Shown here one piece after another: positions 2,949 through 60,616 of a DNA stretch of 64,000 nt. The translations under genes and the position numbers were made by a program. Position 1 is the first letter of the stretch. Every line of letters starts with the position of its first letter. The DNA is taken from sequence record PP885688.1, one strand, 5' to 3'. The notes under the pieces were generated by a model, which was not told the origin of the DNA, ran no database searches, and worked only from the letters and a program-made list of their open reading frames with translations.

Positions 2949-4406
2949 CTAGGCTGCTGACTTCGAAATGGGATCGCCGCACTTACCGCAGAGAGTTACG
3001 TTCGCCTGAGCCTTTTTTTGCTCAGTCTTTCGCTGCTCTGCCTGTATCGTTGCGACTGCTTCTTGTGCGGCTGCGAGCTCCGCTTCGAGATCAGAGAGCC
3101 TGTGCTGCGCCAGCTGTTGAGCCTCGCGGCCCTTCACCAGCGCCTCATAACTTCTAATACCCAAGCGGTGACGCTCTACCTGAATTACGTGTGCATTTAT
3201 TTGCGTAGTGATCGCGTCGATCGCCGCAATGCGTGACTTCGTTGGTGAGTTCGAGGAGACCGTGAGCGCCGCCTCGGCTTCAGTGAGAACCTTGCCCCGT
3301 TTGTGCAGGGCGACGATGGCTGTCCAGTTGCCGACTACCAGCTCGATCGCATCGAGAACCTTGCCGTTGCTTGCGACGCGCGTCGAAGCTTCGACCAGCT
3401 GACCGAGATAGGCCGCCTGCCGGTACCGTCGTACCGCCGGAGCCGCATCGGGGACAGTGAGGACCTTCAGGAGGTCGGTCGTACGCTGATGGCGACCCTT
3501 GGCGTGCGCGGCCTGAGAGTAGGCGGCAGCCAGGGCGAAGTCATGGGCAACAGGCTCCGCATCCGGGACTACCAGATTCAGGACAACCTTGCTGATGCGG
3601 GCGTGACGTTCGAGAGCGGCGACGGCGGTCGCATAATTGGCGACCAGCTGAATGGCGACGGCGATCGGCTTGGTCTCAGGGATCACGAGCTGCTTGATGG
3701 TGGACTGAATCTGAGCGAGCCTGCGCCTATGCGCGATCAGGACATCGATCGTCGCGAGGATCTTCTCCTGCGTGCGTACCTGGGGCTCCAGACGATCGAT
3801 GACGGCCTGGACGGCTTCCGCACGATCGGCGAGAGCATCCAGCTTGGAGACGCGCTCCTCGGTTCCACGGGTCTCTTTGGCAAGCATCGTGGCCTGGGTG
3901 TTCTTCTCTCCGATGCGCTTGTTGCCAGCCTTCTTCCCAGCTTCAAGGCGCTCAGTGGACGAGAACGCTCCAAGGATAGAGTTCAGTGGGCCGGGCTTCT
4001 CTTCGATGATGAATTGGCCACCGAACTGGGTAGCGAAGATGGGATCGAGGGTGACGTCACCGATCTGGATGTCGCCCATGTTGAGGTCGAGTACCTCTTT
4101 CGGGATCGAGCCGCCCAGCTTGGCATAGGGTTCGCCCTTATCGACGACGTAGACGATGGATCCCTTGGGACCTTTCTTACGGGTAGCCTCGATAACATGA
4201 CCGTCGATCTCCAGAGTTACCTCCATGAGATCGCTGCCGACACGGACCTGACCGGCGTTGAGCTGGTTGCGCACGATACCCATAAAAGAGCGGAACAGGG
4301 CACTCTTGCCGAGGTTGCTCTCACCTACGACGACCGTGAGGTCCTCGATCGGCAGTTCGAATTCTTCCCAAGACTGAAAGTTCTTGGCGCTGAGTTTTAT
4401 AGCCAC
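2949..4406 (-). CDS. SbcC/Rad50-like protein, N-terminal ATPase half + coiled coil + zinc hook
   Basis: LSAKNFQSW, Walker A GESNLGKS, long coiled coil, terminal CGKCG; no signature/Walker B half. Confidence 0.8.
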   Translation of the reverse strand: MAIKLSAKNFQSWEEFELPIEDLTVVVGESNLGKSALFRSFMGIVRNQLNAGQVRVGSDLMEVTLEIDGHVIEATRKKGPKGSIVYVVDKGEPYAKLGGSIPKEVLDLNMGDIQIGDVTLDPIFATQFGGQFIIEEKPGPLNSILGAFSSTERLEAGKKAGNKRIGEKNTQATMLAKETRGTEERVSKLDALADRAEAVQAVIDRLEPQVRTQEKILATIDVLIAHRRRLAQIQSTIKQLVIPETKPIAVAIQLVANYATAVAALERHARISKVVLNLVVPDAEPVAHDFALAAAYSQAAHAKGRHQRTTDLLKVLTVPDAAPAVRRYRQAAYLGQLVEASTRVASNGKVLDAIELVVGNWTAIVALHKRGKVLTEAEAALTVSSNSPTKSRIAAIDAITTQINAHVIQVERHRLGIRSYEALVKGREAQQLAQHRLSDLEAELAAAQEAVATIQAEQRKTEQKKAQANVTLCGKCGDPISKSAA

Positions 4407-17953: not shown

Positions 17954-18039
17954 CAACCTACGGACCCGGAAGCGCCAAAGATGAAAATCTAAAAATCTTT
18001 TTTCAAAGTCATTTTTTGAGGGGTCGACCTTGCAGGTTG
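17954..18039. promoter_or_regulatory. divergent pair of class A promoter motifs
   Basis: Minus copy 17954-17984 (TCATCTTT-N12-TCCGTAGGTTG) and plus copy 18009-18039 (TCATTTTT-N12-CTTGCAGGTTG). Confidence 0.65.
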
Positions 18040-18044
18040 TAGGT

Positions 18045-18377
18045 ATGGATAGATTCTTCATAGCTAGACCTTATAGGTATGCGGACGGCGTGCCATGGAA
18101 CGACGACCGCTACGAGATCTTCGTGCTCAATGACAAGCGGGAGCTGGTCAGCGTCGGCGGTGCCATGCGCCGCTGGGACGGGAACACCATCGCTTTCCTG
18201 TGTAAGAAGGCGGTCAATCGCGAGATCCGCACGCCGGTGCAAGCTGAGGCGAAGACCAAAGGCCTGTACGTCTACGGCACCAGCGTGAAGCGGGCCCTGA
18301 ATACTCTCAAGTGGAAGTATCCGGACCCGGAGGCTTTGCTGGCGGAGATCTGGCAACAGGAGATGGCTGCTTTCTAA
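18045..18377 (+). CDS. hypothetical protein
   Basis: Plus-strand ORF MDRFFIARP right after a class A motif. Confidence 0.65.
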   Translation: MDRFFIARPYRYADGVPWNDDRYEIFVLNDKRELVSVGGAMRRWDGNTIAFLCKKAVNREIRTPVQAEAKTKGLYVYGTSVKRALNTLKWKYPDPEALLAEIWQQEMAAF

Positions 18378-19408
18378 GCGATCGGCTGGAGAAGTCGGGA
18401 CTTGCGACCAAACGGGCGATCCTTCTGTGCCCACAGTGCCTTACCGTCTTTTGTCTGCTCAGTCGAGGGAATGATCTTCAGCTTGGTCTTGCGTTCCGCA
18501 AAGACGTACATCGCGGTTGCCAGACCCTGACGCTGGTGTGTGTCGGTGATGTCGAGGGACATGGGGTCGAGGCAGTCGCCGCGATCGGCGAAGGTGACGT
18601 AGCCGATGCTGGTGCCGTCGTAGTAAGCCTTTATCGTAACCATCGGTGTGCCGATGTACGACTTGCCCTTCTCGAAGGTGAGGGTGAAGTCTTTGTACTT
18701 ACCGGCGGGGGAGACGACTACTGGACCGGCGGCGGCCTTCGCCTGTGCATCGAGCTTCTTGGCCATCAGCCACTCGTTCTGGAGCTCTTCCACCTTGACG
18801 AAGCCCAGACTCTCATACCAGCGCAGCAGGTTGAAGCCCTTCTTCTGCTTACGATCTGTGTCGGTTATGAGGAGAGCCGCGACGGCATTGGCGGTGCGAG
18901 CCTGCGCAAGAAAGTCGTTGATGAGTTTGGTGCCTATGCCCTTGCCAGGTGTGTTTGCTTCGATGAAGCCTAGAACTGCTACCTTGTGACCGCGCGTGTA
19001 GGCGAGGCTCTCCGGCAGCCCATCGACCTCGTACTGGCCAAGTTCGTGCATCAGCTCGTCGTCGGTCTCGGTGATCACACCGTGGAACCATCCGTCGGCA
19101 TTCTGTGCTGTGTCATGGATTTTCTGTGCAGCGGTCTTCGGCTCGATCTTCTTGAAGGACTCCTGCGTCCAGAACACCTTCCAACGATTCAGGAAGCGCT
19201 CGGTCTCAGCGCAGTGGCTCTCACCAGGCTTCTCGATGCGCGAGATCACAGCCTCGGCGATGGGCTTGCGGTCGAGGTTGAAGATGATGGGATCGCCGAC
19301 CTTCGCGCGTACCGGCCAGACGAATGCCCAGAACTCTTCGGTGTTCGGTGGCGGCTCTTGCCAGAAGTGACCGTTATCAATTTCAGATTGCGGGACTGTG
19401 ATCTTCAA
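18374..19408 (-). CDS. multi-domain protein with two GNAT acetyltransferase-like domains
   Basis: PGKGIGTKLI..WYESLGF and HQRQGLATAMY..QTKDGKALW; TTG start inferred; ends SRLLQPIA. Confidence 0.7.
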   Translation of the reverse strand: MKITVPQSEIDNGHFWQEPPPNTEEFWAFVWPVRAKVGDPIIFNLDRKPIAEAVISRIEKPGESHCAETERFLNRWKVFWTQESFKKIEPKTAAQKIHDTAQNADGWFHGVITETDDELMHELGQYEVDGLPESLAYTRGHKVAVLGFIEANTPGKGIGTKLINDFLAQARTANAVAALLITDTDRKQKKGFNLLRWYESLGFVKVEELQNEWLMAKKLDAQAKAAAGPVVVSPAGKYKDFTLTFEKGKSYIGTPMVTIKAYYDGTSIGYVTFADRGDCLDPMSLDITDTHQRQGLATAMYVFAERKTKLKIIPSTEQTKDGKALWAQKDRPFGRKSRLLQPIA

Positions 19409-20243
19409 CGCGGGACCTTCGCTCGATAGGTTTGGTGCCGAGCAGTTTGTTGACGCTCGGGTCACCTAAGAGAGAAGTCGTGAAGTTCACTGGTACCGAT
19501 CCGGAATCGTTCTTCATCTGCTCAATAGCGTCGCCGAACCTGCGCCACTTCTCCATCTCGTCGTTGAGCACCTGGCGGGGCTCGTCGAACCAGAAGACAC
19601 CGGCCCAGACGAACAGGGTTAGGATGTACACCGGCTTGAGACCGTTCTGGACTGTGACCCACCAGTCCTGTTCATGGACCAGGAGCGCCATCTCAGCGAT
19701 CAGCTTGCCGGAGAAGTAGATGACCATTCCAAAGGTGACGGCTTGTGAGTACATACGCAAGCGGATCCCTTCGAACATGGTCATGATGGCGAAGCAGAGT
19801 GCGAGGAAGCCAGCGAGGAAGGACGTGCAGAGGCTGATCTTCACCGCGACCGTAACCACTGGGTCGCCGGTGCCGTGGAGCGTTGACACGACGTACAGGC
19901 AGACGAGTGCGGTGAGTGCGGTGGCGTAGACGAGGGGCCGGACCTTACGGCGCTGGTCCTCTCGCAGATGTTTCGCGGTGATGCGGGCGAGTTCGAACAT
20001 CACACCGAAACGGATGATCGCCTCTAGCACCTCACCGGTCCAGTAGGCGAAGAAGTATGCTTCTTTCGCTCCGGACCGGTGAATGATAAACAGGGCTGCG
20101 GTCTGCACGAGCTCGTACACGAGCAGCCCGGTGAACCACGGTAGTGCTAGGTAGCGTTTGCGATAGATCAGGACTGCGGTCAGAGAAACAAGCCCGACCA
20201 CACCCAAGATCCAGCACCACGCGTCCCAATTAGTCAGCGACAT
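19383..20243 (-). CDS. 7-transmembrane membrane protein (receptor-like)
   Basis: Seven hydrophobic segments; start MSLTNWDAW with AAAGGA RBS. Confidence 0.75.
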   Translation of the reverse strand: MSLTNWDAWCWILGVVGLVSLTAVLIYRKRYLALPWFTGLLVYELVQTAALFIIHRSGAKEAYFFAYWTGEVLEAIIRFGVMFELARITAKHLREDQRRKVRPLVYATALTALVCLYVVSTLHGTGDPVVTVAVKISLCTSFLAGFLALCFAIMTMFEGIRLRMYSQAVTFGMVIYFSGKLIAEMALLVHEQDWWVTVQNGLKPVYILTLFVWAGVFWFDEPRQVLNDEMEKWRRFGDAIEQMKNDSGSVPVNFTTSLLGDPSVNKLLGTKPIERRSRVEDHSPAI

Positions 20244-20274
20244 GGTTTCCTTTATGACAACAAGTGGAACAGTG

Positions 20275-20586
20275 TTACCAACGGCGTCCAGGAACGGGCT
20301 CAATGATGCCATCTGGATTTGGGGTCCAGTGGTGTTTCGTGCTCGTCGGCGTAGTTGGGGTAGTGGGAGCCGGTGTCGATGTCGGATCGGTAGGATCGAC
20401 AGGGACAGCCGTAGGATCGTCCGGATCGTCGTCCGGGTCATCCAGGGAATCAAGGCAGGAGGGATCAGTTGGATCACAGACCGTTGTCGGGTCCGAAGGG
20501 GTGGTTGGTATTGCTTGTTGAGCTCGTGCAGCGTGGGACAGGGACATCAATAAAGCGAGAGCAACCAGAGCCAGGTACTTCTTCAT
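20275..20586 (-). CDS. secreted Pro/Thr/Asp-rich peptide precursor
   Basis: Signal peptide MKKYLALVALALLMSLSHAARA, low-complexity spacer, terminal GIIEPVPGRRW. Confidence 0.75.
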   Translation of the reverse strand: MKKYLALVALALLMSLSHAARAQQAIPTTPSDPTTVCDPTDPSCLDSLDDPDDDPDDPTAVPVDPTDPTSTPAPTTPTTPTSTKHHWTPNPDGIIEPVPGRRW

Positions 20587-20707
20587 GCGATTCAGGGGTT
20601 CCTTCTATGCGTTTCGACTCAGCCTTAGAACTACTGGGAAGATTGTTCCAGCATAGCGTAAAAATTTCCCACTGTGTGCATAGCTTTGCAGATAGTTTTC
20701 AACAGGC

Positions 20708-23269
20708 CTACGACGCGCGACTCTTCCAGAACGCCTTGCCCGCTTCCGTCTGCGTCTTCGCTGGCTGCAGCTTGATGCCGGTCTGCTGTTCGTAGGTGCG
20801 ATAGAGACCGGTGGCGATTCCACGACGCCGGTAGTTCTCATCGACGTACAGATTCTCTCCCTTGAAGTACTCGTCGTCGAAGGTTGCGCCGTAAGTCTTG
20901 TAGCACTCAACGCGGCCTACTACGTTCGTTGGTTCGAAGCCATCTGGTAGGTCCCTTGCATCGATGCCGAAGACGGACTTGAGGTAGCGTGCCTCGTCCG
21001 GCATGTTCGCAGCCTTGTCGAGGGCGAGCACGACGGCGGTCTCGTCAACGTTGACGATGTAGAAGGTGATGCCTGGTGCGGTGCCAGCTGCGGTCTTTCC
21101 TAAGCCAGCCGCAACCTCACGCGACAATTCGATTAGCTTGTTCAGCTTCACGCCCTTCGCGTTGCGGGCTGAGACCGAGACAGGAAGGTATCCTCTGCCT
21201 GTCTGTAGCGCGGCGGCATACCGATGGTGGCCATCGATCAGCGTTACTACGGGTTGCGTGTCGTCGTTCTTTCGACCGAAGCGGAATGCCGTCACATCGA
21301 CAGGTTCGGAGTAGTCCATGTTGTGAGCTACGTCGTCGCTGACAATCTGAACCTCTGGCCGGAAGTCCATCTCCTGCCGTTCAATCGCCGACAGTGGCAG
21401 GTAGTGGATCGCTGGGATAGGTCCGTTGTACTTCTCCTCCGGCTTGTACTTCTGCCCATCATCTGCCGTAGCTGCCGCCGAGCGCGACAAACTCGTCACG
21501 GTCGGGACATACTCGGTCGTCAACAGCTTGAGACGGTTGGGAGCAATCCTCTGCTTGCATACGTACCAGGGCGTACCCCAATCTTCGTCGCGGAACTGAT
21601 ACCCGCCCTCGTCCGGCTGAATATCCAAGCCCTTGACGTTCACTTCCCAGTGATCGAAGTGCTCGGGCTCTGCCGCCTCACCGCTATTAGGATTTGTAGC
21701 GAGGTACACGCCCTTGCGACTGTACTTCGCAGGGTTGAGTCCGTTCTTCAAGATCTCGTCGCGGTAGTAAGGACTAATGCTGTGGTAGAGGATGTCGGGG
21801 TGAGAAACCGCAGCCGTCTTGCGAAGCGTGTTGACTTCGTCCTGGGGATCGAAGCGACGGATGACGCCGGGCCCGCCAAGCACGATGATCTCGTCGTTCT
21901 CACGGTGAACTGATCGCACACGCACAACCGGGGCAGGGAACGCGAGCAGATCGCCAGCCTTCAGATCCTCAGCCTTCATCCAGCTACCAGTCTTGGCGCT
22001 GGCGGCCTTCTGCTGTTGGTGTACCGGGATCTCTTCGCATATAGAGAGGACATCTTTCCCCTCAACGTTCGCCGCGTCTTCTTTCTTGAAGCGCCAGGCC
22101 GTCGTTGGATAGATGGCACCGAGGTGGGCGAGGTGAGCGCCGTGGTCAAGCATCCACTTCACGACTGCGGGCGATAGGAGCTTCTGGACCTTCTTACCGA
22201 CTGCAGCTTGTCCGTCGATGAAGTGATCCATGATTTTCTGGCGCTGCTTATCCGTCATGACGCGCGACGCGGCCCAGCGAAGTTCATTGCGAACCGTCTC
22301 CGGTGTGCCTGGCTGGTTGATCGGGGAGCTCATCGCCCACTGGATCGCCCGATTGAGGGAGTCAGCCTCTCCAGCCCAGCGCAGAGGTGACTTCTCCTTC
22401 GTAATCTCGCGGTGACGCTTCTCCGCCTTATCCATGCTGAGTAGGTGGCTGATGAATTCACCGATCGAATCTTCATCCGGAACTGCATCCCCGGTGAGGT
22501 CGGCTCCACGCATCTCGAAGATGTAACCGTAGGGTTCGGAACCCTGAACGAACTTCTTGGTCTCCTCGCCGTGGTTGAACATGGATCCGCCGAGCGCGTA
22601 TACGGCGGCGTAGGCAACGTCGTGGCTGACGTAGACCCGGCCCTGAGCTGGTGCCAGCTGAGCGCGGCTCTTGGCTTTGGCGGGCATAGATATTTCGCGA
22701 GGCTGGATGCCAGAGGTGAGGATGGCTTGGGCGGCGGCTTCGGTGGGAGTGCCGTGGAAGTAGGGCCGGTCTGCGGCCTCCGCGTGAAGGGGAGCTGCGG
22801 TCTTGGACAGATTCTGTAGCGCCGCCGGTATGCCTTGACCAGCGGGAAGGCGGGAGAAGCTGGTGCCGTTACCTACACGCTTCTCCCAGGTCTGCGGGTC
22901 TCCATATAGCTTCGTGATGAGTGCGGTATCTGAGAGTGGGATCCGGCCCGGGGTTCCCATGTAGTCGGCTGCCCAGGGATCCACGATGAAGTTGTCGATG
23001 ATCGCGAAGTCGTGGCCACCCTCACCGGCTCCGTCTGCGAGTTCTGCGGTCGGGTTGTCCTTCTTCTGGTAGCCGAAGATCTCGCCGTGGCCGATCTGCT
23101 TGATGACGTTCTCCGCCGCCATGGTGCAGTTTCCCCACGGGTTGCCGGTCTCCTCGATCGCGCCGGTCTCGAAGGCGTCGTCAACATCCTTCATCATCTG
23201 GGCCAGGATCGCGTCGATCTGGTCGGGGAGAGAGCTGGCGCGGCGGGTTAGGAGCTTTGAACGGGACAT
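20708..23269 (-). CDS. polyvalent protein: transglutaminase-like + two ART-like + ParB-like + GNAT domains
   Basis: GNC..H..VDP triad; YFHGT..VYVS..PDEDS; LYHS..GVYLA; LIDGHHRYAAA; NYRRRGIATGLY. Confidence 0.7.
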   Translation of the reverse strand: MSRSKLLTRRASSLPDQIDAILAQMMKDVDDAFETGAIEETGNPWGNCTMAAENVIKQIGHGEIFGYQKKDNPTAELADGAGEGGHDFAIIDNFIVDPWAADYMGTPGRIPLSDTALITKLYGDPQTWEKRVGNGTSFSRLPAGQGIPAALQNLSKTAAPLHAEAADRPYFHGTPTEAAAQAILTSGIQPREISMPAKAKSRAQLAPAQGRVYVSHDVAYAAVYALGGSMFNHGEETKKFVQGSEPYGYIFEMRGADLTGDAVPDEDSIGEFISHLLSMDKAEKRHREITKEKSPLRWAGEADSLNRAIQWAMSSPINQPGTPETVRNELRWAASRVMTDKQRQKIMDHFIDGQAAVGKKVQKLLSPAVVKWMLDHGAHLAHLGAIYPTTAWRFKKEDAANVEGKDVLSICEEIPVHQQQKAASAKTGSWMKAEDLKAGDLLAFPAPVVRVRSVHRENDEIIVLGGPGVIRRFDPQDEVNTLRKTAAVSHPDILYHSISPYYRDEILKNGLNPAKYSRKGVYLATNPNSGEAAEPEHFDHWEVNVKGLDIQPDEGGYQFRDEDWGTPWYVCKQRIAPNRLKLLTTEYVPTVTSLSRSAAATADDGQKYKPEEKYNGPIPAIHYLPLSAIERQEMDFRPEVQIVSDDVAHNMDYSEPVDVTAFRFGRKNDDTQPVVTLIDGHHRYAAALQTGRGYLPVSVSARNAKGVKLNKLIELSREVAAGLGKTAAGTAPGITFYIVNVDETAVVLALDKAANMPDEARYLKSVFGIDARDLPDGFEPTNVVGRVECYKTYGATFDDEYFKGENLYVDENYRRRGIATGLYRTYEQQTGIKLQPAKTQTEAGKAFWKSRAS

Positions 23270-23404
23270 CTGCAGGGACCTCTACTTTGCAAATACAAAG
23301 TCGAGGCCCGGTTACCCGTTTATGTGACAAAGAAAGTTTCGACTACCGGACTGAGGGTGAGGGCGAAAGCCCACAGTGCAGTCAAGTCAAGTCGGAGAAT
23401 ATCC

Positions 23405-24355
23405 ATGAGCAAGAGCAGCAAGAAAGACACCCCTGTGTCCGCGAACTTTGTCGCGGTCGCCAGCCCAACACTCAAGACAGCCCCCGCAGTACCGCCGAAC
23501 CCCTCCGCACCACAAGCCTTCTCCACGGTCCACACCTGCGAGTCCCTACCGAACACCATCACCGTCGGTGACAGCACCCTCCAGAACGCCAACCTCCCCA
23601 TCGGCAACTGCTACATCCCCTCACAGACAGCGCCGGATCTCAGCGACTGGAACCGCACCATGCCCAACCAAGGCCTGCCCTATCCACTTCTCGAGCCAAC
23701 CTTCACCTACACCCTCCAGCAGCCGCAGTACTGGGGTGTCCGCCGCCGGACCGACATCCAGCAACAACCACACGGTTATTGGGTTGTTCGTCCGCAGGAT
23801 ATGGTGCACGTCCACAACACTGAGAGCATCGTCGCGCGGTGTGAGACCGAGAATGATGCCATGTACCTCTGCCAGCTCCTCACCAAGGCGGACAAGGAGA
23901 CGAGTAATCCGCAGTGGGGCGTTCAACGCTCACCAAAGACGTCGGACGCTAAGTTTGGTGTGAACTTCCGGAAGCGCAGCCCTGACTCTCTTCGGACACA
24001 TGGAGATGACGGGGTCGTAGCCTGGTGTAAGAACGAAGACTGCGCGGAATCCCTCGTAATGGTGTTGAACGAATCGATGGAGCGCGAAGCTGTGGCCGCG
24101 ACTAAGACGGACGTCAAGCGCCAGGTACAGATGGTGACCTACGAGTACGTCCAGCGGATCACCAAGGACCTCGCCGGTCGCGTCCTGACAGTGCTTGATG
24201 CGTCTTACGTCAACGAGCAGCAGAACAAGGCTGTGAAGTCGCTCACGAAACGTGAATTCCGTGAAACCCTATCGAAGCTCTGGACCTACTGTCACCGTGC
24301 GGACGGAAGTGACGAGAGTGAAGAGGCTGGAGCACCGGATAACATCCTCGACTAA
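23405..24355 (+). CDS. hypothetical protein with internal tandem duplication
   Basis: Start MSKSSKK with GGAG RBS; repeats WGV.R..VA.C..E..A..L. Confidence 0.7.
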   Translation: MSKSSKKDTPVSANFVAVASPTLKTAPAVPPNPSAPQAFSTVHTCESLPNTITVGDSTLQNANLPIGNCYIPSQTAPDLSDWNRTMPNQGLPYPLLEPTFTYTLQQPQYWGVRRRTDIQQQPHGYWVVRPQDMVHVHNTESIVARCETENDAMYLCQLLTKADKETSNPQWGVQRSPKTSDAKFGVNFRKRSPDSLRTHGDDGVVAWCKNEDCAESLVMVLNESMEREAVAATKTDVKRQVQMVTYEYVQRITKDLAGRVLTVLDASYVNEQQNKAVKSLTKREFRETLSKLWTYCHRADGSDESEEAGAPDNILD

Positions 24356-57295: not shown

Positions 57296-60200
57296 TTATC
57301 GTGTGGGCAGTGCGCCGTTTGAGGCCACGAGAGTGATGGCGTTAGAGGGGTAGACAGTCCAGGTGAAAGCGACTGAGGCGTTGACGCCGGAGTCCGACAC
57401 CGAGAAGTTGAAGGTATGAGTCCCCACCCCTGCCGCACCAAAGGGTCCGCTCAATGCGAAGACAGCGGACTTGGGCAGAGTGATCGTCTGGGAGCCAACG
57501 GAAAGGTTGATGGTTCCCAGGGAGACGCAGGAAGCACTGAAACCAGCCGGGACGCCGAAGCTGAAGCCAGACGGCGAGGTCGAGATGACGTTGGTCGCTA
57601 CGATCAGGAAGCTCAGGTTGGGACGCGGGTTGATGGCGGTGACATCTCCATTCGCGACAAGACCAAGCGAGTTGAGCGAAGAGCCCGCGATGACGTCAGG
57701 ACCAGCGAAGAGCTTGATACCGGCGAGCACGGTAACCGGGAATGTCGCCTCACGCACGACGCCGATCGAGTCGGTGACGCGGAAGGTGATGTTCTTCGAG
57801 AAGCCCGAGGCCAGCGTGGTGCCGAAGATCGTGCCGGACGGAGGATCAATGCTGAGTCCGCTTGGCAGAACTGAGGCAGAGTTCGGGGACACAGACCATG
57901 TGTAGCCGGGTGCGCCGCCAGTCGCGGTGAGAGCGAAGTTGTAGGGAACGCCTGCAGTGGCCTGCGCCACCGAGGTGGAGGTGATCGCCAGTGTGGAGGC
58001 GAGCGCAATCAGCTGGAGGCCCTTGGTGGCGAAGTCTCCGAGATGATCCGTTACGCGAACCACGATAGTGAGATTTGCTGTCGCCGTGGGAACGCCGGAG
58101 ATGATGCCGCCGCTGGAGATCGTGAGTCCATTCGGGAGCGGCGGCGAGGTGGGATCAAGCGACCAGGTGAAGGGTGGGTTGAGACCGTTCGCCAAGAGCT
58201 GCACCGAGTAGTTTCCGGTGACCGTTGCCTGGGGCAGCGAGGTCGTCGCAACCGAGAGGCCGGAGAAGGTGTCGAGCGGCAGGAAGGTCACAGCCGAGTT
58301 TCCGTTGGAGTCGACGACCTGAACCTTGACCGAGTCATTGAGCAGCTGAGCCACGGTACGTCCGGCGAGCGTCGCGGTTGCACCCTGATTGGTCGCGTCG
58401 CCGGTAAGTGTGAAGCCCGGCGGGAGGATGTTCGGAGAGTCAGCAGCGATCGACCAGGTGTAAGGCGCAATACCGTTGCCGATGACACTGAGACGACCGT
58501 TGTAGGTTGCTCCGCGAACGATGGGGCCGATACCTTCGGTGTCGATGATGAGGCCGAAGTTTGATCCGATCGCGAGCAGGAAGGTCGCCGTGGCAACGTT
58601 GTTGGCCGCATCGGTCACTTGCACAATGATGTTCTCGGAGAAGCTGCTGAGGCTGGTGGCTCCGGACAGGATGCCAGAGGCAGATAGCGTGATGCCGCCG
58701 GGAAGCGCTGCAGATCCCGAGCCGAGTGACCACTGGTACGCGCCTTGTCCGCCTGCTGCCTGAACCTGGAAGATGTAGTTGGTGCCGGGGGTGATGACGG
58801 GGAGAACCGGGGTCGTGATCGTCAATGTGTTGTTGATGATCAGAGCCAGTGCAGCTGAAGCCGAGACGCCGCGTGCATCGGTGACCTGGAAGGTAATGTC
58901 TGAATTGAAAGCCGCGTCGCTAGGAGTGCCTGAGAGGACGCCGGAGTTCGCGTTGAGCGTGACACCGTTGGGCAGCGTGCCGCCGGTAACGGCCCACGTG
59001 TAAGGCTGAGTTCCGCCGGTGGCGTGGAGGGTCTGTGAGAACGCTACGCCGGTGAGGATGTTCTGGAGGAAGGTCGTCTGAACGACGAGCGGCGCAATGT
59101 ACGCGAACACGAGGCGCTTGTAGAGGTAGGCGACCTGATTGTTTGCGTTGGTCACCGAGATCCACACGTCGTAGTAGCCAGCCTGCGTCGGCGTGCCGGT
59201 CAGAGTGACAGACTTCGCATCCGTCGAGATCCCGAAAGCCATGCCGGTGGGCAGCACGCCACGGTGAATCGTGACTCCACTGAGTGGTGCCGAGGAGCTC
59301 GATCCGAGCGTGCCCGTGTAAGCCGCCTGCAGTTGGCCGTCGACGAGGTTATCGATCAGCTGGAACTGGCTGGCGACGATGTCCCACACCACGGTGATCG
59401 TGGCCTGAATGGTGCCGGTCGAATCGACGTACTGAAGGGTCGACTGCGCGACGTCGGCGGCAAGCACGGATCCATAGATCAGGCCGGTGACTGAGTCGAG
59501 CGACAGGCCGAGTGGGAGCGTGCTGTTGAGCGCAACCTGAACCTTGTAGCCTGCGTTCTTGAAGATGCTGGGAGAGTTGAAGTAGGGGCGCTGCGGGTTG
59601 AGACCGACGACCTCTCCTACGATGTAAGGCTTGGTTGTGCAGGTCATGTCTCCGCTGTTGTTGGTTCCGTTGTAGGAGACCAGCGTGAACGCGCGGGTGA
59701 TGGTGGCGACCTGTGTGGTGCCCTGCAGGATGGCGATCGGAAGCTCGATCTCAGCGTTGCCGAACTTGGTCGGTGGGCCGGTGACGATGAGCGAGTTGGT
59801 GGTAGGGTCAACTGTCGCGGTGAGGCCGTTCGATGCGGTCACCGGCGTGCCAGCGCCGATAGCGAAGCCAGAGAGATCTCCGGCAATGGGGTACACGACC
59901 TCGGTGGTGTCGCCTGCGCCCCAGAAGTGATCGACCGCAGTCTCTGCGATATCGACACTGGAGACCGGCGTGTCCACGGTGTAGTTGAAAGTATTGTGCG
60001 TCACGGTCGCGGTGGAGTCGGCGACGGTGAGCGTGAACTGGTGGGTTCCAACTTCACCCTGCAGCGCCGCGACCTGAATCAGCGCATGGCCGTCGACGAT
60101 GGAGACGACGGTAGCCGAGGCGACCGAGATGCTGAGAACGCGTGTGACGGTATTGCCGAGGAGATCGGTTGCACGGACGCCGATCGCCCACTCACCCAGA

Positions 60201-60616
60201 GAGGTCAGGGTGAAGGAGAGCGTGCTTCCGACGATGTCTGCGCCAGGCAGAGTTGTGACCGAGGGAATGAGCGACCAGGTGACGGCTCCGTTCCCGCCGG
60301 TGGAGGACAGGGGGACGGTGGCGGAGAAAGGGAGGATGTTGGGTTCAATGGCGACGTCGCGGTTCAGAATACTGAACGTGGTGGGATCAACGACATCGAC
60401 CGAGATGATCTTGGTGGAGACGATACCTTTTTGATCGGTGATCTGCAGCTGGACCGAATAAGTGCCGGTCGCGAGTGAGGTTGCATCGACCGTGAGGGCC
60501 GTTCCTGCGAGCGTCGCGGGAATTGTGGTGTTGGGTCCGGCGACCACTGCGAAGTTATATGGCGGCGAGCCACCCGCTCCCACCAAAGTTACTGTTGTCT
60601 GATTCGTCTGACCCAT
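57296..60616 (-). CDS. large Ig-repeat (He_PIG putative Ig domain) protein
   Basis: Repeated A.GG..PY.W....G.LP.GL.L...G.ISG.PT modules. Confidence 0.85.
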   Translation of the reverse strand: MGQTNQTTVTLVGAGGSPPYNFAVVAGPNTTIPATLAGTALTVDATSLATGTYSVQLQITDQKGIVSTKIISVDVVDPTTFSILNRDVAIEPNILPFSATVPLSSTGGNGAVTWSLIPSVTTLPGADIVGSTLSFTLTSLGEWAIGVRATDLLGNTVTRVLSISVASATVVSIVDGHALIQVAALQGEVGTHQFTLTVADSTATVTHNTFNYTVDTPVSSVDIAETAVDHFWGAGDTTEVVYPIAGDLSGFAIGAGTPVTASNGLTATVDPTTNSLIVTGPPTKFGNAEIELPIAILQGTTQVATITRAFTLVSYNGTNNSGDMTCTTKPYIVGEVVGLNPQRPYFNSPSIFKNAGYKVQVALNSTLPLGLSLDSVTGLIYGSVLAADVAQSTLQYVDSTGTIQATITVVWDIVASQFQLIDNLVDGQLQAAYTGTLGSSSSAPLSGVTIHRGVLPTGMAFGISTDAKSVTLTGTPTQAGYYDVWISVTNANNQVAYLYKRLVFAYIAPLVVQTTFLQNILTGVAFSQTLHATGGTQPYTWAVTGGTLPNGVTLNANSGVLSGTPSDAAFNSDITFQVTDARGVSASAALALIINNTLTITTPVLPVITPGTNYIFQVQAAGGQGAYQWSLGSGSAALPGGITLSASGILSGATSLSSFSENIIVQVTDAANNVATATFLLAIGSNFGLIIDTEGIGPIVRGATYNGRLSVIGNGIAPYTWSIAADSPNILPPGFTLTGDATNQGATATLAGRTVAQLLNDSVKVQVVDSNGNSAVTFLPLDTFSGLSVATTSLPQATVTGNYSVQLLANGLNPPFTWSLDPTSPPLPNGLTISSGGIISGVPTATANLTIVVRVTDHLGDFATKGLQLIALASTLAITSTSVAQATAGVPYNFALTATGGAPGYTWSVSPNSASVLPSGLSIDPPSGTIFGTTLASGFSKNITFRVTDSIGVVREATFPVTVLAGIKLFAGPDVIAGSSLNSLGLVANGDVTAINPRPNLSFLIVATNVISTSPSGFSFGVPAGFSASCVSLGTINLSVGSQTITLPKSAVFALSGPFGAAGVGTHTFNFSVSDSGVNASVAFTWTVYPSNAITLVASNGALPTR

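Follow-up and report, generated by a model that had tools for sequence, protein, structure and literature searches.

A conserved gene pair of jumbo phage Tunturi_5: an exported protein with a C-terminal proline tag and a seven-transmembrane protein

The locus

Tunturiibacter phage Tunturi_5 (PP885688.1) is a 309-kb jumbo myovirus of Arctic tundra soil origin (PMC11924767) that infects soil Acidobacteria. The part of its genome considered here, a window of 64,000 nucleotides (nt), contains at positions 19383-20586 two minus-strand genes, the first for an exported protein (P0001) and the second for a seven-transmembrane (7TM) inner-membrane protein (P0002), and the subject of this report is what these two products might do together. 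Both genes are real, and all features of the pair described below lie on the minus strand. The first (20275..20586) is absent from the annotation of the GenBank record; it is an open reading frame (ORF) of 103 amino acids (aa) with a syntenic homologous ORF in L001, the nearest related locus, and a GAAGGA ribosome-binding site stands ~12 nt ahead of its ATG in the unannotated intergenic region that separates it from gp205 (20587..20707). An initial annotation made from the sequence had described a signal peptide, a Pro/Thr/Asp spacer and a distinct C-terminal tail, and each of these is present. Residues 1-22 (20521..20586) form a predicted signal peptide with KK, a hydrophobic core and A-R-A before Q23 (mean Kyte-Doolittle value of 3.05 by a hydrophobicity heuristic). 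The mature part of 81 aa, with 19 Pro, 16 Thr and 14 Asp and an isoelectric point of 4.05, has a single cysteine pair (C37-x6-C44) that bounds the loop C37-DPTDPS-C44 (20455..20478), followed by an acidic Pro/Thr/Asp-rich spacer which, judging from its composition, is probably extended and disordered (residues ~45-86; 20329..20454). Near its end is the tag PDGIIEPVP (residues 91-99; 20290..20316), whose [DEN]-P-x-P motif is conserved in the family; the protein stops four residues past the tag and has no hydrophobic tail. Identity as a spanin, holin or lipoprotein was ruled out: there is no lipobox, and chromosomal homologues occur in ordinary bacterial contexts.

A 31-nt spacer (20244..20274) leads to the second gene and carries an AAGGAA Shine-Dalgarno sequence 4-5 nt ahead of the start codon of a 286-aa 7TM protein (19383..20243), which is gp204 with its start corrected and for which loop charges (the positive-inside rule) predict an N-out, C-in topology with a cytoplasmic tail of ~65 aa. 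In GenBank, gp204 has 310 aa and a start 69 nt further upstream, overlapping the end of the peptide gene, and a 364-aa ORF in a program-made list is likewise over-extended upstream into the peptide gene. Because every homologue begins at an MSL-x-x-W position (MSL(T/S)NWDAW), the GenBank start is probably too far upstream, and the shorter one is used here. Scans of both proteins against Pfam, PHROG, NCBIfam and PADLOC returned nothing meaningful, so the 7TM protein, which had been described as following the peptide ORF immediately and as having no kinase or effector domain, indeed has no such domain. A search for sigma70-like promoter sites, which phage-specific promoters would escape, found none in 18000-23500; the initial annotation had likewise seen neither promoter class directly upstream.

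Conserved linkage and a modular C-terminal tag

Linkage was assessed in 45 distinct loci of the 7TM family taken from genome, metagenome and assembly collections. At 33 of them, the 7TM gene is preceded on the same strand, at 8-120 nt, by an ORF whose product has a signal peptide and is proline-rich in its mature part, or such an ORF overlaps its start. The common motif core can be written G-x(0-2)-[D/E/N]-P-x-P, as in GPIDPFP, GPVDPTP, GTDPEP and GTNPRP; the phage has DGIIEPVP. Signal peptide and motif together were found upstream of 23/45 family genes as compared to 7/370 control ORFs in the same DNA (odds ratio 54, Fisher p = 1.7e-19); it is the motif that carries this test, because the signal-peptide heuristic alone is unspecific, being positive upstream of 223/370 control ORFs. 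The motif was defined on the first loci, those fetched later providing an out-of-sample check, and it is also present in the out-of-sample loci L034, L036-L039, L058-L060 and L072. A linked gene for an exported peptide occurs in all deep branches of the 7TM family, down to ~20% 7TM identity, and the 12 exceptions consist of 11 loci that form one shallow clade, plus L029. The expectation that homologues would have an upstream peptide ORF is thus borne out in every deep branch and fails for that clade and L029. The suggestion that such pairs occur in Acidobacteria was correct, as homologous pairs are found in Acidobacteriota genomes. A practical point is that P0001 is absent from the GenBank record and that the small peptide genes of related contigs are often overlooked by gene callers, or else mis-framed.

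The pairing also appears to be exclusive. Several classes (two or three members) coexist in each of the genomes G002, G003 and G105, and there each 7TM protein has its own peptide. When G003 was searched genome-wide, the strict motif was found solely in the linked gene, and genome-wide pattern searches of two peptide-less genomes revealed no unlinked exported ORF with the strict motif; these results speak in favour of dedicated pairs and against a sorting system with many clients. Motif hits in G001 and G004 were at control level and outside exported ORFs. That the genes are mere neighbours, functionally unlinked, could be argued on the grounds that small signal-peptide-like ORFs are common in GC-rich DNA, as the controls demonstrate, but it is very hard to believe given the 54-fold enrichment of motif plus signal peptide, the persistence of linkage across such distant lineages and the purifying selection on the tag described below. 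Because the pairing recurs in Acidobacteria, in their phages and in a conjugative-type element, the two genes almost certainly work together.

The tag itself is both conserved and modular. L001, whose 7TM protein is 64% identical to that of the phage and where gp205-like and gp203-like genes are syntenic, encodes a 57-aa precursor that lacks the acidic spacer and carries PDGVIEPIP; with PDGVIEPVP, also found among the nearest relatives of the phage peptide, this confirms the suspected conservation of the C-terminus. A much larger carrier is encoded at L059, a phage-like contig with DNA polymerase A and RNase H, where a secreted 400-aa Peptidase_A4 protein (P0163) directly upstream of the 7TM homologue P0010 has three copies of PDGVIEPVP in tandem at its C-terminus. 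At L052, which also carries an integrase and a dUTPase, the gene for a second Peptidase_A4 protein (P0160, 51% identical) overlaps the start of that for the 7TM homologue P0011 by 1 nt, and its product ends with a variant motif and a short hydrophobic tail. Since it is also attached to peptidase cargo, the tag is a portable C-terminal module and more than a pheromone-like peptide. Five copies of the 9-codon tag on three contigs differ almost exclusively at synonymous sites, so that this frame must be translated and subject to purifying selection. The region of P0163 with the three tags, used in a word search, matched P0163 alone, and a degenerate DNA pattern for the 9-aa tag gave two chance matches in a viral contig collection, on the non-coding strand of a gene of an unrelated AT-rich phage.

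These observations bear on the initial proposal of a peptide signalling pair, of which the linked exported peptide and 7TM protein are supported and the communication role stays a conjecture, as does a decoy for a host peptide-sensing system, the other candidate role raised at the outset. In its intercellular form, the product or a motif fragment would be released, for instance at lysis, and sensed by the 7TM protein of other infected or lysogenic cells. The signal peptide and the short mature peptides would suit such a role, as would precursors with several motif copies (five in L009, three in L018, two in L058), tandem peptide genes (L027, L028, L033, L036, L039), carriage on phage-like contigs and a conjugative-type element, and the rapid divergence of cognate pairs with a variable outer and a conserved inner half of the 7TM protein. 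However, in a diderm host Sec delivers to the periplasm only, an exporter or outer-membrane uptake gene is not consistently linked, and the acidic 81-aa product exceeds the porin size limit; moreover, the family has no consistently linked kinase or regulator, the phage pair has neither a kinase nor a transcription factor linked to it, and the same tag on a 400-aa enzyme is easier to reconcile with docking or recognition than with a diffusible signal. We consider this explanation improbable. Arbitrium (AimP/AimR) shares with the pair a phage-encoded Sec-type peptide precursor, but AimR is a cytoplasmic tetratricopeptide repeat (TPR) receptor that operates via oligopeptide import in monoderm hosts, whereas in our case a 7TM protein is the partner, in a diderm host, and homologous pairs are mainly chromosomal. 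Nor is there an AimR-like TPR neighbour, the genes on either side encoding a GNAT-containing protein and a polyvalent ADP-ribosyltransferase/ParB/GNAT protein. The Agr system offers no closer parallel, as no Pfam match to AgrB or AgrD was found and the signal peptide of the precursor is of the classical Sec kind, unlike an AgrD-type leader.

The 7TM family, its classes and a third gene

A word-index search with the phage 7TM protein retrieved seven homologues of 44-64% identity, and a profile search of 1.84 billion representatives (E <= 1e-3) expanded the family to 416 clusters at 50% identity. Among the best 150 family hits of these 416 clusters are 113 stand-alone proteins of 225-300 aa. In Pfam scans of 113 family members, no family was matched consistently. 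PADLOC models did not match P0001, P0002, P0010, P0030 or P0162, a profile search with the 7TM family alignment (A2) had no match among PDB sequences, and a viral contig collection scanned with the family alignment contained no relative; the neighbours in the ESM Atlas, according to a protein language model, are unnamed Acidobacteriota hypothetical clusters only, with no named look-alike. The N-terminal extensions of P0053, P0113, P0115, P0123, P0125 and P0146 were examined as candidate peptide fusions and rejected as mis-called starts. In the partial protein P0054, a signal peptide, a C-x10-C peptide and the 7TM N-terminus share a single frame, which might reflect a tethered-ligand fusion or a lost stop codon.

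An AlphaFold2 model of the 7TM protein, made with eight homologues, has seven transmembrane (TM) helices and one cytoplasmic helix (predicted local distance difference test score, pLDDT, of 70). Foldseek matched it to generic bundles like those of rhodopsin and G-protein-coupled receptors (GPCRs) only (best E = 0.05, TM-score 0.36-0.47), and the top VIA match (Z = 12.2, rmsd 4.2 A over 192 residues) is within a helical-bundle background that extends to ~13; GPR180-TMEM145_TM is matched by one family member at E = 5e-4. Adhesion and class A/B GPCRs come out as the nearest structures, with scores inside this background, and the likeness to eukaryotic peptide-binding or tethered-ligand GPCRs would be one of fold only: seven helices, N-out and C-in, with the outer half variable and the inner half conserved. 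The family has no sequence similarity to those receptors, no G-protein machinery and no sign of common descent with them. A comparison with sensor 7TM and MASE families had been suggested, and neither Pfam (113 members) nor Foldseek offers any match of that sort. 7TMR-DISM, 5TMR-LYT and MASE are also bacterial multi-pass sensor membrane modules, but they have Pfam models and come joined to sensor domains outside the cell and output domains in the cytoplasm, whereas the proteins of this family stand alone.

At least 90% conservation is seen at W11, L21, L25, P35, F37, L51, Y63, E84, G172 and W213, of which E84 is at the cytoplasmic end of TM3; Y67, W68 and D/E74 are just under this threshold. 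On the periplasmic face the residues conserved family-wide are all aromatic (W11, Y63, Y67 and W68), a surface that would suit a proline-rich ligand. C115, C139 and H55 are invariant in the phage-near clade and unconserved family-wide. Information content is higher in the cytoplasmic than in the periplasmic half (1.94 vs 1.59 bits per column, p = 0.001), an arrangement that is reminiscent, if only suggestively, of receptors with a diversifying ligand side.

It could be supposed that the 7TM protein is a new membrane enzyme for sorting or processing, comparable to an exosortase or rhombosortase, which cleaves or transfers proteins at the C-terminal motif. Such an enzyme would explain why cargo of widely differing size has both a signal peptide and a C-terminal proline motif, and why a hydrophobic tail of 12-17 residues follows the motif in many members; among exosortases, dedicated pairs of sortase and target with adjacent genes are known. 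On the other hand, there is no conserved nucleophile or acid-base set, the only polar residues conserved to at least 90% being Y63 and E84, and across the 113 members there is no Cys/His/Ser or nucleophile/base set like those of exosortases, rhombosortases, CPBP proteins or site-2 proteases. The hydrophobic tail has no basic cluster behind it and is missing from the phage protein, tandem motif repeats speak against a single cleavage site, and none of 113 members matches Exosortase_EpsH, Rhomboid or CPBP. There is, in our estimation, only an outside chance that this is what the protein does. The comparison with PEP-CTERM/exosortase systems has the same two sides: they too combine a signal peptide with a C-terminal proline-containing motif on variable cargo and a multi-pass membrane partner encoded nearby, but the motif here lacks the following TM helix and basic cluster, the Cys/Arg/His catalytic set is missing, and instead of the many tagged clients per genome that are usual there, one client is found per 7TM protein. 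Neither P0002 nor any of the 113 family members matches Exosortase_EpsH (Pfam) or Xrt (NCBIfam).

When four peptide states were mapped onto a maximum-likelihood tree of 45 7TM proteins, the class of motif was seen to follow the 7TM phylogeny, with 5 label changes as compared to 24.4 expected when labels were shuffled (0/200 shuffles gave as few). Class A, with GP-[IVM]-[DE]-P-x-P and no third gene, includes the phage, both peptidase loci, chromosomal copies and L060, which lies beside type IV secretion-like genes (TrbI, SLT, AAA). In class B, the motif is G-[TG]-[DN]-P-x-P, usually followed by the hydrophobic tail, and a third gene is always present. Class C is the deepest branch, and its peptides have a P-x-C-x6-7-C-G loop; the loop of P0001 resembles the C-x6-7-C loops in the peptides of L028, L033, L020, L032 and L031. 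The fourth, peptide-less state is that of L029 and of the 11-locus clade, which is nested within class A, a distribution that suggests one or two losses of the peptide rather than its general absence.

The third gene of class B, located after the 7TM gene (for example at L010:4749-5276, L009:4790-5320 and L058:2408-2965, among others; alignment A3), encodes a family of ~176-aa proteins, A3, with an N-terminal TM segment and a helical domain. Scans of Pfam, PHROG, NCBIfam and PADLOC yielded nothing meaningful for A3, and its model (pLDDT 87) gave only generic four-helix bundles in Foldseek, such as FAT domains (E >= 0.19). In P0109 and P0158, the 7TM protein and the A3 domain are naturally fused (hhalign 81%, E = 1.3e-5, collinear to the C-terminus). 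By hhalign, A3 is unrelated to the cytoplasmic tail of the phage-clade 7TM proteins.

A membrane-anchored third partner in the cytoplasm brings to mind SdpC/SdpI/SdpR of Bacillus subtilis and, with it, the idea of a toxin-immunity pair, in which the exported product would harm cells without the cognate 7TM protein, which would neutralise or sense it. The three-protein logic of the Sdp system, as reportedly established, has a Sec-exported disulfide peptide encoded beside a polytopic membrane protein with no enzymatic domain, as here, which acts as immunity protein and receptor and captures a cytoplasmic partner at the membrane; class B places its third protein at the cytoplasmic face. The order of the genes, exported peptide and then polytopic membrane protein with tight or overlapping spacing, would fit a toxin and its immunity protein, as would the patchy distribution of the family (13/301 sampled genomes), the several orthogonal pairs per genome, the tandem peptide genes and the carriage on mobile elements. 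However, neither protein is homologous to SdpI, CPBP/Abi or known bacteriocins; the peptides, rich in proline and either acidic or neutral, are not of the amphipathic, cationic kind, and there is no export route through the outer membrane; furthermore, an immunity protein that reads a modular C-terminal tag in place of a toxic domain would be unusual. We regard toxin-immunity as unlikely. With the Sdp system the pair has no sequence or Pfam relation (the Pfam SdpI model matches neither P0002, at E <= 0.1, nor the 113 members, at E <= 0.01), and it differs further in having a diderm host and a modular proline tag that is also found on an enzyme; toxicity would be hypothetical here. Class II bacteriocins with CPBP/Abi immunity proteins similarly pair a gene for a small exported peptide with a following one for a multi-pass membrane protein, and those pairs diversify and are often on mobile DNA, but here the peptides are proline-rich and acidic, a dedicated exporter is lacking and there is no match to CPBP/Abi (PF02517) or its motifs EExxxR, FxxxH and HxxxN. 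A sequence E71-x2-E74-x3-R78 occurs in the phage-near clade only, and Q is the consensus of the family at position 78.

A few other features of individual loci were noted. In the peptide-less L004-L008, a conserved frame of ~30 codons (ITTQTSRIFEE.QRLRRFPDIKSPNA.EYVM; at ~3850-3950) with no signal peptide is found right before the 7TM gene and could be a leader or a regulatory element. G003, a metagenome-assembled genome labelled Ktedonobacteraceae (Chloroflexota), has three family members of different classes (L003/L013, L018 and L019) nested among those of Acidobacteriota, a placement that may be due to mis-binning or horizontal transfer. Genes resembling TonB-dependent receptors (CarboxypepD_reg with beta-barrel/Plug) occur near three chromosomal loci (L002:7177-10779, L072:1-1922 and L074:1-2689), which may be a coincidence or could be relevant to peptide uptake.

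A possible docking pair in the envelope

The reading that we favour, although we would put it at slightly short of an even chance, is that the two proteins are a dedicated pair in the envelope of the infected cell, one a periplasmic tag or ligand and the other a 7TM receptor that docks it. In this model, Sec would export the first product and its signal peptide would be removed, the mature protein then remaining in the periplasm, where the C-terminal proline motif would dock on the periplasmic face of the adjacent 7TM protein near W11, Y63, Y67 and W68. We infer the physical binding, its site, the periplasmic retention and any downstream effect from the sequence patterns described above. The motif would be used as a module, nearly alone in some members, with an acidic Pro/Thr/Asp stalk and a disulfide loop in this phage, or on a whole Peptidase_A4 protein in phage-like contigs. 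Docking might keep the cargo, which is the acidic stalk in this phage and a protease in other loci, at the inner membrane, report occupancy to the cytoplasm, or do both. As the 7TM protein has no set of catalytic residues and its cytoplasmic half is the better conserved, occupancy is probably used or relayed inside, in the class B clade perhaps through the membrane-anchored four-helix-bundle protein that is sometimes fused to the 7TM protein.

Several observations weigh against docking. The 11-homologue clade and L029 have no linked or detectable unlinked motif peptide, yet they have kept Y63, Y67 and W68. A pheromone precursor with multiple copies, or a toxin that diversifies, could also show motif repeats (2-5 copies) and tandem genes for the peptide, and the clustering of motif classes on the 7TM tree may reflect co-inheritance. 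The phage clade is without the third gene, so there is no visible output route there, and the similarity to the GPCR fold is inside the helical-bundle background. A more elaborate version, which is possible but which we think doubtful, is that of a private code in use among Acidobacteria and their phages: genetically encoded [D/E/N]-P-x-P ligands in the periplasm, free or on cargo such as a protease, would each be read by their own GPCR-fold 7TM protein that relays occupancy to the cytoplasm, and Tunturi 5 would install its own orthogonal pair in the infected cell. As a bacterial peptide/7TM receptor system for signalling or docking, this would be without any counterpart described so far. Whatever probability is not taken up by docking and the four alternatives discussed above falls to mechanisms other than these.

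We rate the pair as apparently outside the known kinds of system, because no family model, solved structure, defence-system model or paper was found for either protein or for their pairing, and the candidate analogues (SdpC/SdpI, bacteriocin-immunity pairs and exosortase targets) do not extend to it when membership is examined. The literature contains no description of the 7TM family or of the pairing that we could find, and the paper on the Tunturi phages makes no mention of gp204, transmembrane proteins or signal peptides (PMC11924767). What emerges is a sizeable unnamed family, most sampled loci of which have a cognate exported partner, together with a concrete hypothesis, that a proline tag docks on a stand-alone 7TM protein. 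Few soil bacteria are as abundant as Acidobacteriota, and to our knowledge almost none of their envelope and signalling systems has been characterised. The module evidently moves on mobile DNA, being present in a jumbo phage, further phage-like contigs and a conjugative-type element, which points to a part in conflicts between phage and host or between cells. Should the pair turn out to consist of ligand and receptor, bacteria would have an equivalent of peptide-binding 7TM receptors, and the short tag could serve to tether proteins at the inner membrane.

The genes that flank the pair have features of their own. The start of gp203 (18374-19465, minus strand) overlaps the end of the 7TM gene, an arrangement that is also kept in L001; it is annotated as a MutT/NUDIX hydrolase, yet its Pfam matches are to GNAT acetyltransferases only (Acetyltransf_7, E = 6.5e-7, with a second stretch matching Acetyltransf_1). 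On the other side, gp205 (20708-23269, minus strand; 853 aa) carries the annotation of an ADP-ribosyltransferase toxin; it matches GNAT at its C-terminus and, weakly, a ParB-like DNA-binding domain, and in L001 its N-terminal third alone is present upstream of the pair as a separate 363-aa gene. Farther away in the window, ARAGORN called a putative tRNA-Leu(GAG) at 59758-59848 on the plus strand, opposite a long minus-strand ORF (57296-60616).

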